DNA from: Oikopleura dioica
Taxonomy: Eukaryota; Animalia; Chordata
Direction: 5' to 3'
Assembly: GCA_907165135.1 (NCBI GenBank)
Contig: OU015569.1
Location: 5,084,001-5,148,000 of the forward strand
Length of the DNA stretch: 64,000 bases
Position numbers and translations under genes: made by a program. Within the stretch, counting starts at the first letter, position 1. Each line of letters begins with the position of its first letter. Below the pieces are notes generated by a model. The model saw only the letters and a program-made list of their open reading frames with translations, was not told where the DNA came from and made no database searches. This document shows, one piece after another, positions 2,756 to 56,722 of the stretch.

Positions 2756-3034
2756 CCTTACGCCGCCAAACTAAAATTTCACCCCCCGCCGCCAAATGTG
2801 CCATATATGGCACATCATCTTTTCCGTCGTCCTAGGCCCCATATAATGGCCGAACCCGAACCTTAACCAAGATCCGAACTCAAACCAGAACCCGAGCTCA
2901 AAAATGAACCCAAACCCAAGCCCAGACTATTGCCCGAAAATGAGTAAAAATGGAAGAACCCGAAATGATGACGGAGAGAAAAATGGGTTTTGGAAAGCCC
3001 TTGTGCCATATATGGCACATTTGGCGGCGTAGGG
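2756..3034. mobile_element. Non-autonomous TIR element (MITE) with TTAA flanks, piggyBac-like
   Basis: TTAA at 2752-2755 and 3035-3038. Left end CCTTACGCCGCCAAA; right end reverse complement CCCTACGCCGCCAAATGTGCCATATATGGCACA. The same ~28 bp recurs at 2787-2814. No ORF of transposase size. Confidence 0.8.
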
Positions 3035-3155
3035 TTAAGTACCATTAAGAATTTCTAGCGACAATAAAGTGACTTTACAGAAGGGTAATCAATCTCTTTA
3101 AATCTTGCGCTCTCTAGAATTATTGATGATCTGACAAAAAAGGTACTCCCTCGGC

Positions 3156-3228
3156 GGCCGCGTGGCCTAATGGATATGGCGTCTGACTTCGAATCAGGAA
3201 GTTGTGGGTTCGAGTCCCATCGTGGTCA
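3156..3228 (+). tRNA. trnR-UCG: tRNA-Arg, anticodon TCG
   Basis: GGCCGCG/CGTGGTC acceptor stem, TGGCCTAATGG A-box, anticodon arm TCTGA-CTTCGAA-TCAGG, GTGGG-TTCGAGT-CCCAT T arm. Confidence 0.95.
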
Positions 3229-53553: not shown

Positions 53554-55347
53554 TCAGAAACAATCTCTGACCAGCTCGATTTGAGGCGTGTCGCCGACTG
53601 TCTTGAACAGGAACATGCTTTCAAGGCACTAGAAATTCGTTATAATCAAGCCCGATCTTTAATAAGTGGCTTACTTTTAGCCCAATCGATCGTAGAGCTG
53701 GAAGACGGAGGAGAAGTTTCGCAAAGCGGCCGGGTTGCTCCGGGTATTTCTGTTTAGCTATATTTTAAGCTTAGATTTAATTATGTTCTCCCGACTTACA
53801 GTAAGCCTCTAGCGTGGCGTAAACTTTTTCTCGCAAATCTTCGACAAGGAGCGGGTCTTGTAACTGCTTGACGTCGGGATTGTACAAAATGATCGCCTTC
53901 AAGCAACCAAGTTCTGTTCGATCCAGCTATTCAATGTTTTATAAAAAAAATGATGCGTGTAATCACTGTACCTTCATTTCTTTCATTTTATAAACCAATT
54001 CCGTAATAACGCGTCCGAAAATGATGTCAACATTTGTCGATGTGGCTTGTCCTCGCGTGAGGATTTCATTCTTTCCAATGAGCAGTTTATCCTAAATGAG
54101 TGGAACGGTAAATTTTTTTGGGATATTGATAAAAAGAAACCTCGAATTCCATCGAGCGATGCGCGATGTCCGCGATTGTGATTTCATTCCAGGCACTCTG
54201 CACTAGATAAACTCTATCGTCTGTTTTTAACGTCTCAAACTGCGGAATCATCTTTGTCCACTCAATAAGCGCACGAAGATATTCAGTGACGTAGTTGACT
54301 GAAAAAAAGCATTCTATTAAAAAAGATGCGACCGTTACAAACCTCCTTGATTCTGTTGGTATAACCTGTCCAATTCGTTTTCCGCGTCTCTGATCTGTTC
54401 TATAGGCATTTCATCAAATGGGTGCCCGCCGTTTTCAGATGCTAAAGCATAATGAATAAAATATGGTTAGCCCACAGGTAAGTCTAGAATAAATTGGTTG
54501 AGAAAAACAGCGCTTGTCTACGCGACTTACAAATATTTCGGGACATCATAGACGACTCCCCTCCGTTCTCGTAGTCCATCATCATTTTGCCGGCGTCCTT
54601 CGAAACTAGGGAAAGTTGATAAGCAGAAATTAACAGCTAAACTTACTTTCGCCCTGGACTGCTTCGCGCTTCATTCCCATCGTCAGACACTTTTGATATC
54701 GACAAAACTAAACAAAAATAAAAACGTGTCTTGATTATTTTAGTCATAATCCGGGTCACTTATGAACCCTTTAAAAAGCTAACCTGGCATCTATTTCTCT
54801 GTCGCTTGTCGATGACGCAGTGTTTGTTATCTCTACAGGAGTATGAGAGCTCTTTTCTGACCGTGCGTTTGAAAAAGCCCTAAGAACGAACATTAGCACA
54901 TTTTGGTAGGTTTTTTTAGTCTCACTTTGCAACCTTCGCAGCTGTATAAGCCGTAGTGTTTTCCAGAGGCTCTGTCTCCGCAAACTAGAATGAATCTAAG
55001 TGAAACTAGAACAGAAGTAGAAATTACCTTTGCAAACATGCTTCGAGTGAAATGCGCCCTCAGAGTAGATATCCATCGAGAAGTCGTTGGCATCATTGGG
55101 GATCTCGCCGACGTACTCGGGCTCTTCTTTGATGTATGGCGAGTTGGTGTCGATTTGAACATTCTAATCAAGCTTGTTTTAACTGTGCAGAAAGATAAGA
55201 AGCTACTTCGTCATCGTCAGAATGCTGATTTTGAGGGTTTTGCTCCTCCTGCGTCATCATAGGTCGTGACAGATGATTCTGGAAGCGTTGCTGGAGAGAT
55301 TGGAAGCGCTGGTCCTCGGACATATCCATGGGCTCCCCTCCGCCCAT
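53554..55347 (-). CDS. RXR: Retinoid X receptor (NR2B)
   Basis: [75 protein letters not shown]; LBD with [48 protein letters not shown]. Start codon uncertain (55347 or upstream). Confidence 0.95.
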
Positions 55348-55759
55348 TCCAGGGAAGAGACCCCTTAACACTTTTGATAACCATAAAATCCTTTGTAACT
55401 TATCCTCCCGGACCTTTTAGCTCACCTAAAAATAATCAAGCCTCGGGATGACAAAATCATAATGAGCACGAAGTGATTATATTATGGTAAACGTACTGAA
55501 GACTAAATACGCTTCCACCAGCATGTCAACTATTAAAATTCCCGGCAAAGGAATACTCTGATACTAACCTCGGAAAACCAAAATTCATGATTTAAACTGC
55601 CTTGGCCGATTCGGTACAATTTAACAATCTTAACACCAAAGAGGTAAGAATCTCGGTTGTTTTCGCTCTCTTGATCGCATTGGTGATCTGATAGTTTTAA
55701 ATTATTTGCTAATCTTCCACTGATACTATGAGGAATCTTCGATAAGGCGTCGATGTGAA

Positions 55760-56526
55760 TTACTTTTCTCGCATCTTTTTCTCGAGTACATAAGCATCTG
55801 CCGGCGTTATTTTCTGTAATTGGTTAACGTAATTAAGTGTTTTCTCCTACAATAACAGCCTTTATTATAAATTTTCAATGACACTGGTCGAAAATGAGGT
55901 AGGAAACATAAAAAAAACAGTGTCAATGAAGAGAGAAGATACTATTGATTATTAAATAACCAGCCCTTGTAATAACCTTCTTTAGTATCAACGACCGTGA
56001 AACCGTTCTTCTCGTAAAGTCGTCGGGCAGCATCATTATTCGTCTGGACATGTAACGTTACAAGATCGACTTTCTCTTTTTGCGCGTGTTCCAAAATATG
56101 GCTACCGATTTTTGGTTTATTCGCGAAATCAATAATTGTACTATTACTTCAGTAGCTTCTGGCCGACTCCGAGCCGTCTGTACCGCGGTAAGCACCCCAA
56201 AGTCATAATGTAGCATCTCTTCTGATTGTCAACAACCTCTATAAAGGACTGAAAAAATGCTTTTGAAAGGGTTTAACCTGTTCTTGCACACACGGCCCCT
56301 ATGGTTAGATCGTCAAGGAAAGCGAGCTTCGACCACTCTCCGAGCGCGATAATATCGCGATAAAATCTGAACATGAAAAATGGAGCTCATGTTGGGTTAT
56401 TTTGAGGGCCATCTTGGAACTCAGTTACCTATGATTGTAGGAAACGGGAAACACTTGCTGATTTATCAGCCGTAATACGCGAACGTTGTGCTGTGTGACT
56501 TCACCCAGTTCTATCGTGCCAACCAT
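55760..56526 (-). CDS. NAA50: N-alpha-acetyltransferase 50 (NatE catalytic subunit)
   Basis: IELGEVTQHN..VFPVSYN..YIMTLGCLPRYRRLGVGQKLL..LHVQTNN..GYYK|KITPADAYVL. Confidence 0.93.
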
Positions 56527-56722
56527 CTCTTTAACGATCACGGCTAAAGCGAACTTCTCAAGAACTCGGAAAGCTTACCCACTTTTACTTTCAATAACAG
56601 TGACAATCATAATCATATCATTTACATTTGTACAATTGAATTTGAAGAAAAACAAAATATGAAGTTTATTGAATATAAAACGTATAATTAAAAAAATAAG
56701 AAATGCGTGGAATATTGTGAGA

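Follow-up and report, generated by a model that had tools for sequence, protein, structure and literature searches.

A retinoid X receptor of Oikopleura dioica with a diverged ligand-binding half and a conserved dimerisation half

The RXR (NR2B) of the appendicularian Oikopleura dioica, encoded on the minus strand of a 64,000-nucleotide stretch of contig OU015569.1 (positions 5,084,001 to 5,148,000; hereafter the window, whose own coordinates are used throughout), is the product of an intact and expressed gene under strong purifying selection. Judged from alignments, the set of residues by which canonical RXRs recognise 9-cis-retinoic acid (9cRA) is largely gone from this receptor, while the surface through which it binds its partners by dimerisation is kept. 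We consider it probable that the protein is a rexinoid-insensitive, dimerisation-competent RXR that parallels the USP proteins of insects. The kind of change is already known from insect USP and this appendicularian version of it is new, with 9cRA insensitivity predicted. Many nuclear receptors share RXR as their hub partner, and O. dioica is a textbook chordate with dismantled retinoic acid (RA) signalling.

The RXR gene and its identity

The gene is made up of 13 exons encoding 421 amino acids, separated by introns of 41-205 nt that all have GT-AG borders, as read by six-frame translation and splice-site inspection. The model is 100% identical over 415 amino acids (residues 7-421) to the public protein CAG5096683.1 (P0215; OKI2018_I69.XSR.g14734.t1), which shares a 90%-identity protein cluster with CBY08024.1 (E4X6L6_OIKDI) from Norwegian O. 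dioica; public records give RXR no name beyond unnamed or uncharacterised protein. Across every junction, the model runs colinear with two full-length proteins derived from cDNA, P0104 (95.7% identical) and P0105 (85.6%). Five junctions are read directly in marine plankton metatranscriptome contigs (run X1) that are at least 99% identical to the window, including those that join 54298 to 54343, 54605 to 54647, and 54707 to 54784, and a contig of the same run is contiguous from 53628 to 53505 through the RXR stop codon. Because that contig is unspliced over 53628-53505, the short RXR C-terminus is real and no further splice follows it. RNA reads of a divergent lineage (runs X11-X13; 88-95% alike and mostly partial) reach two junctions by way of loose ends and show no direct joint. 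The features of the gene are as follows, where H denotes a helix of the ligand-binding domain (LBD).

53554..55588, minus strand: whole RXR (NR2B) coding region, colinear with P0104 and P0105 and equal to P0215 over residues 7-421
55569..55588, minus strand: first coding exon (MNFGFPR...), matching P0104 and the Norwegian CBY08024.1 at the N-terminus; a 205-nt intron follows and exon 2 starts at 55363
54647..55028, minus strand: DNA-binding domain (DBD) with the CEGCKG P-box, in exons 54926-54984, 54784-54879 and 54647-54707 and the end of exon 55028-55163
54343..54441, minus strand: exon for the end of the hinge and H1, with H1 placed by multiple sequence alignment (MSA) and AlphaFold
54299..54342, minus strand: H1/H3 intron, 44 nt, GT-AG, with its junction in a cDNA contig
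54141..54298, minus strand: exon for H3-H5 with the replaced pocket residues (HMMER match to RXR chains, E=8e-10; Pfam PF00104; MSA)
53972..54091, minus strand: exon for the beta-turn, H6 and H7, with L326I and A327G replaced and V342, I345, F346, V349 and the pi-turn residues R348 and E352 unchanged (47/47 PDB matches RXR/USP; MSA)
53675..53926, minus strand: exons for H8-H10 (53800-53926 and 53675-53757), the dimerisation surface (MSA)
53554..53628, minus strand: last exon, H11-H12, with C432 unchanged, H435S and L436M replaced, and the stop codon at 53554-53556 (cDNA contig)

Searches with single exons aside, sequence searches of the PDB and AlphaFold modelling were carried out on P0104 as a stand-in for the window RXR, and Pfam was also run on P0215. 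P0104 scores 383 bits against RXRalpha over DBD and LBD, 213 against HNF4alpha and 150 against RARgamma, and every one of the 47 PDB matches of the H7 exon alone is an RXR or USP. Pfam recognises both the zinc finger (zf-C4, PF00105, E=3e-31 on P0215) and Hormone_recep (PF00104). The P-box is the RXR-type CEGCKG, RXRalpha DBD chains score 148-152 bits, and the top 50 structural matches of the LBD model are all RXR. In a maximum-likelihood tree of RXR sequences, the window RXR and 15 related proteins form one clade (Shimodaira-Hasegawa-like approximate likelihood ratio test, SH-aLRT, 100), which joins the ascidian RXRs (SH-aLRT 99) within the chordate RXRs; its stem branch measures 2.83 substitutions/site. 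The first-pass annotation of this DNA had called the gene an RXR, and the PDB scores, the H7 exon matches and the tree placement bear it out. The literature likewise confirms, for appendicularians, its statement that RAR and RA metabolism were lost in O. dioica: the species has a single RXR orthologue and is without RAR, TR, Aldh1a, Cyp26 and Rdh10 (PMC5882950, PMC7540406, PMC7827873).

A shortened connection between H1 and H3

The conserved AE of H1 is separated from the EW of H3 by 24 residues in the window RXR and by 41 in mammalian RXRalpha, a shortening of 17. This agrees with the earlier count of 12 residues against about 29 for the connection itself. The shortening is real because cDNA contigs confirm the 44-nt H1/H3 intron. 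The intron had been put at about 45 bp and held to be too short to hide an exon, which is correct: 54298 is joined to 54343 in cDNA, in CAG5096683.1 and in 15 related cDNA-derived proteins. In the AlphaFold model, H1 is a single helix of 17 residues that runs to Gln-Gln and is followed by a turn of 5 residues, after which H3 begins at the 271-equivalent residue. Since H3 starts there in the model, the receptor is without the H2/omega-loop and without the conserved DPVTNIC, in which I268 and C269 lie, at the start of H3. The H1 exon alone returned no matches among PDB sequences.

Residues of the ligand pocket

Pocket residues were numbered from a gapless HMMER alignment to RXRalpha chains, cross-checked on 4nqa, 3dzu and 1fby, with the MSA anchored on Q275. 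The six positions named in the first-pass annotation, listed here with their codons as given by the HMMER alignment, had each been read correctly, as HMMER and the MSA agree.

54291-54293, minus strand: A271 replaced by Tyr
54288-54290, minus strand: A272 replaced by Val
54279-54281, minus strand: Q275 replaced by Tyr
54177-54179, minus strand: L309 replaced by Thr
54165-54167, minus strand: F313 replaced by Ile
54156-54158, minus strand: R316 kept as Arg

The MSA adds the replacements L326I, A327G, R371K, H435S and L436M, with W305, N306, I310, R316, L325, V342, I345, F346, V349, C432 and F439 unchanged. Eleven residues have been described as critical for 9cRA, namely A271, A272, Q275, L309, F313, R316, L326, A327, R371, C432 and H435 (PMC5624297); nine of them are replaced in the window RXR, leaving R316 and C432. 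The Egea signature, Q-x33-L-x3-F-x2-R-x9-L-x44-R-x63-H (PMC5624297), reads Y..T..I..R..I..K..S, so that one of its seven positions (R316) is kept. A pocket signature of 20 residues is letter-identical in bat, amphioxus, the ascidian Styela and the mollusc Aplysia, and the window RXR differs from it at 9 of the 20; the vertebrate RXRs in the comparison are from bat, lizard, fish and bird. 9cRA fails to activate a human RXR that carries Q275C, I310M and F313I together (PMC2831033). The earlier proposal that the pocket loses 9-cis-RA recognition therefore stands as far as the recognition set is concerned, with 9/11 critical residues and 6/7 signature positions replaced, while a loss of binding itself would be a prediction from these replacements.

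The replacements do not add up to a filled pocket. Summed over the 20 alignable pocket residues, side-chain volume is 3036 Å3 in the canonical receptor and 3072 Å3 in the window RXR (+36), with a range of 2895-3156 Å3 (-141 to +120 Å3) across the clade. The net volume is approximately unchanged because the bulk gained on H3 is offset by L309T and F313I on H5, A327G at the beta-turn and H435S on H11. An RXR cavity measures several hundred Å3. The first-pass annotation had envisaged a self-filled pocket, for which a sum of only +36 Å3 gives little ground. Nor is the change specific to the pocket: 11 of 22 pocket sites are changed, compared with 52 of 140 other canonical-conserved LBD sites (Fisher p=0.35), and a pocket-specific enrichment is rejected. 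The description of the pocket as remodelled thus holds for its residues, which are replaced, and does not hold as something peculiar to the pocket.

A possible loss of organotin binding had also been suggested, for which we find no case. C432, the organotin anchor, is kept in 16/16 clade members, and tributyltin (TBT) acts on divergent pockets (PMC7225927). Because TBT responses occur even without the Cys, organotin insensitivity is not predicted by the sequence.

The dimerisation half and the ligand/AF-2 half

Change within the LBD is strongly uneven. Across H7-H11, 64 of 78 canonical-conserved sites are kept (82%), against 31 of 77 (40%) in H1-H6 and H12 (Fisher p=9e-8). Sites are kept at 11/12 in H9, 4/4 in L9-10 and 24/28 in H10-11, compared with 3/13 in the beta-turn region and 0/6 in H12. 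A 20-residue stretch of the dimerisation surface is identical to that of vertebrate RXR, and the LLLRLPAL heptad, the pi-turn RxxxE in H7 (R348, E352), S427 and R421 are present and invariant in the clade; the pi-turn motif is as defined in PMC8092661, and S427 and R421 as determinants are from PMC5624297. The view that DBD and dimer interface are near canonical is upheld by the DBD scores given above and by the H9-H11 sites, most of which are unchanged.

The other half carries further replacements, which are fixed in the clade: V280I and A283T in H3, and I299Y, L301V and R302Q in H4, at positions that we take to lie on the coactivator groove. The activation function 2 (AF-2) core reads LVRDCF instead of the canonical FLMEML and is followed directly by the stop codon. 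Its hydrophobic pattern is kept and Glu is replaced by Asp; at this position the residue in most of the clade is N, T or K.

The AlphaFold model of P0104:201-420, whose LBD differs from that of the window at about 3 positions by non-synonymous count, has a mean predicted local distance difference test (pLDDT) score of 91.3 and a predicted template modelling (pTM) score of 0.89. It has the RXR LBD fold overall (Z 26-29.5, root-mean-square deviation, rmsd, 1.4-2). The best structural matches are 3eyb, an apo form (Z 29.5, rmsd 1.4), and 1dkf and 7qaa (Z 28.8-28.9), all aligned through the last residue; by their entry titles these are the amphioxus RXR LBD, a RAR/RXR LBD heterodimer, and a RARalpha/RXRalpha heterodimer with BMS614 and oleic acid. 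Agonist- and coactivator-bound RXR forms match at Z ~26.4 and are aligned to residue 215 only. Presumably H12 lies outside the agonist position in 3eyb, 1dkf and 7qaa, and the model gives a weak hint that H12 may not be a classical agonist switch.

Conservation across appendicularian RXRs

Searches with the H3-H5 exon and with a related protein (P0022) brought up some 15 different full-length proteins of marine metatranscriptomes that are 60-96% identical to the window RXR, together with single-exon fragments on metagenome contigs. With the window RXR, 15 of these proteins make up the 16 appendicularian-type RXRs of the clade. Tyr at 275, Ile at 313 and Met at 436 are each found in 15/16, with S or T at 435, V, I or S at 272, and Y, H or Q at 271. 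All 16 have a short loop between H1 and H3 (L1-3), which is 0 to +9 residues long relative to that of the window RXR, and all 16 end exactly at the L455 position with a short H12. One subclade (P0022, P0092-P0094) has Lys in place of the carboxylate-anchoring Arg316 and an L1-3 that is 5-7 residues longer than in the window RXR.

Proportions of non-synonymous (pN) and synonymous (pS) differences were counted between the window and L001, the marine-metatranscriptome cDNA contig behind P0104. These are 0.011 and 0.77 (saturated) for the LBD, 0.018 and 0.85 for the DBD, and 0.079 and 0.76 for the A/B region; pN and pS are given instead of dN/dS because synonymous sites are saturated. Since pN is as low in the LBD as in the DBD, the remodelled LBD is as constrained as the DBD and is not decaying. 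In the RNA reads of the divergent lineage, 25 of 26 differences are synonymous.

Relation to known RXR and USP proteins

The window RXR and the canonical RXRs (NR2B1-3) of vertebrates, amphioxus, ascidians and molluscs are orthologous and share domain order, the CEGCKG P-box, an identical H10-H11 dimerisation stretch, the pi-turn RxxxE, S427, R421 and the LBD fold. The window RXR differs from them in its H1-H3 connection, which is 17 residues shorter and without DPVTNIC, in the 9/20 replaced pocket residues, in its rewritten AF-2 core and in the absence of a C-terminal tail.

The closest parallels are in insects. In the ligand-independent USP of non-Mecopterida insects such as Tribolium and Bemisia (Iwema et al. 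2007, as summarised in PMC3162005 and PMC7225927), an RXR orthologue is kept as an obligate dimer partner after retinoid response was lost, as is proposed for the window RXR, and L1-3 is variable. Tribolium USP keeps its pocket residues and lost the cavity by rearrangement of the backbone, whereas in the window RXR the residues are replaced. The USP of Mecopterida (Drosophila, Heliothis) underwent one burst of LBD change on its stem branch, followed by constraint (PMC3162005), and resembles the appendicularian RXR in where the changes cluster, namely L1-3, pocket and coactivator groove as well as H12; its H12 is no classical agonist switch and its partner function is kept, as is predicted for the appendicularian RXR. 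The two part ways in that an insertion in the L1-3 of Mecopterida USP locks H12 and its large pocket is filled with phospholipid, whereas the appendicularian RXR has an L1-3 deletion and a truncated H12; the Mecopterida-type insertion is absent from the window RXR, whose L1-3 is shortened. The engineered human RXRalpha Q275C/I310M/F313I (PMC2831033) no longer responds to 9cRA; it too is altered at Q275 and has the very F313I replacement of the window RXR, but its three changes were made in the laboratory and gave it a response to a synthetic ligand, and the window RXR has many more changes. The literature searched holds no description of the appendicularian RXR pocket, though an earlier mention may exist.

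Favoured explanation and its rivals

In the explanation that we favour, the LBD would have been rebuilt in its ligand and co-regulator half on the appendicularian stem. This would have removed the H2/omega-loop together with the first H3 turns, replaced the nine 9cRA-critical residues and rewritten the H3/H4 groove and AF-2 helix, and the protein would have come to end at the AF-2 core, with the H7-H11 dimer half and the DBD staying almost canonical. The pocket has been reshaped by a gain of Tyr, Val and Tyr on H3 and a loss of bulk on H5, the beta-turn and H11. Such a receptor would retain DNA binding and partner pairing and would have lost switching triggered by 9-cis-RA or rexinoids, and its most likely partners would be the expanded NR1H/NR1I receptors of O. 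dioica, which has 10 NR1H and 6 NR1I genes and in which PPAR was not detected (PMC3292500). From the residues replaced, loss of the normal 9cRA response appears quite likely, and it is somewhat favoured that the receptor serves chiefly for dimerisation with partners.

Several points weigh against this explanation. Sequence is a poor predictor of ligand response in the RXR family: Tribolium USP keeps its pocket residues yet does not bind 9cRA, and Trichoplax and cnidarian RXRs with 3-4 substitutions still respond to it (PMC7225927). The length of L1-3 varies within the RXR/USP family, as is also stated in PMC3162005, and Nasonia USP is only 4 residues longer there than the window RXR. Pocket residues W305, N306, I310, V342, I345, F346, V349, C432 and F439 are invariant in the clade, as is R316 outside the Lys subclade. 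Given these invariant residues and the approximately unchanged volume, a ligand-accessible cavity may persist. Since change is not enriched in the pocket, the pattern is explained in part by a general burst of rate, the genome being a fast-evolving one. The position of H12 in the AlphaFold model may be an artefact, and the tree contains RXR sequences only, with no non-RXR outgroup.

The rivals differ chiefly in what they make of the pocket. It may have collapsed and be filled by its own side chains, leaving no ligand cavity at all and a partner that, like the USP of Tribolium or Bemisia, works wholly without ligand; two Tyr and one Val from H3 point into it, the N-terminal H3 turns that carry I268 and C269 are missing, the clade does not conserve the AF-2 Glu, and RXR conformations of the apo or antagonist type are the best structural matches. 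This falls somewhat short of an even chance in our estimation, because the gain in side-chain volume is small, is negative in several clade members and is far below the size of the cavity, and because a basic residue at 316 and C432 are kept. The pocket might instead have been re-tuned to another small lipophilic acid, such as a dietary or algal fatty acid or an appendicularian signal, anchored by R/K316 against a Tyr-lined H3 wall. The new pocket residues are conserved across a clade of only 60% overall identity, the LBD is as constrained as the DBD, R/K316, N306 and C432 persist along with half of the pocket at a nearly constant total volume, and human RXR engineered at Q275/I310/F313 switches ligand without losing binding (PMC2831033). 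We nevertheless regard re-tuning as doubtful: buried core residues are conserved with or without a ligand, the rewritten AF-2 core, with its conserved Glu gone in most clade members, speaks against a classical ligand-to-coactivator switch, and there is no candidate ligand. In a related and equally tentative proposal, RXR was neofunctionalised, its pocket being re-tuned to a different lipophilic ligand after the loss of RAR and RA metabolism, with an H12 that is non-classical and possibly auto-inhibitory. If true, a re-tuned RXR would be a new chordate hormone or nutrient sensor serving expanded NR1H/NR1I partners.

An ordinary RXR that still binds 9-cis-RA, docosahexaenoic acid (DHA) and organotins and acts as in ascidians seems unlikely. 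The responsive Trichoplax and cnidarian RXRs and the retention of R316 and C432 would allow for it, but those receptors have 2-4 changes where the window RXR has nine among the 11 critical residues, A271Y and Q275Y bring large changes to two positions that do not vary from molluscs to mammals, the human triple mutant QCIMFI is 9cRA-blind (PMC2831033), and O. dioica lacks genes for RA synthesis. Least probable of all, in our judgement, is a neutral by-product of genome-wide fast evolution without functional shift. O. dioica is known as fast-evolving (PMC7540406, PMC3292500) and the lack of pocket enrichment is what such a by-product would give, but the change is strongly non-uniform between the dimer half and the ligand/AF-2 half, the new states are frozen in the clade under strong purifying selection, and a long stem branch is followed by much shorter branches inside the clade. 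We return to a rexinoid-insensitive, dimerisation-competent RXR as the best account of the sequence.

Transcript variants, neighbouring gene and divergence within O. dioica

An annotated isoform, t2 (CAG5096685.1, P0214; 262 aa), ends in ...QQNQGGL, which corresponds to read-through into the 44-nt H1/H3 intron. Its product would consist of DBD, hinge and H1 without the LBD, and may be a regulated product or annotation noise. In reads of run X12, a loose-end consensus at 54951 has an agreement of only 0.8, and a skip of 324 nt (54600-54925) has non-canonical ends; the intervening exons being too divergent to align is the likely cause of this skip, rather than a real isoform.

A gene for an NAA50-type N-alpha-acetyltransferase lies directly upstream of RXR at 55942-56541 on the minus strand. 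Its exon 56428-56541 matches residues 7-35 of human NAA50 (E=5e-7), and 55945-56094 matches GNAT Pfam families. The first 32 amino acids of the public RXR model t1 (P0215) derive from the first exon of NAA50, while the cDNA-derived RXRs of other lineages start with MNFGFPR instead, encoded at 55569-55588. The joining of NAA50 and RXR in P0215 is probably an annotation fusion or operon read-through. By its public gene name, OKI2018_I69.XSR.g14734, RXR lies in the part of the sex chromosome that is X-specific.

Between the window, which is from Okinawa (53554-55588), and the Atlantic-type cDNA (L001:66-1328), pS is saturated at ~0.77 and the proteins are 95.7% identical. Saturated synonymous sites together with similar proteins are a vivid case of deep cryptic-species divergence within 'O. 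dioica'.

Implications

The appendicularian RXR is a chordate counterpart to the insect RXR-to-USP transition, and a case of what becomes of a hub receptor after its ligand pathway has been lost. It also bears on whether rexinoid and organotin pollutants act via RXR in one of the most abundant groups of zooplankton.

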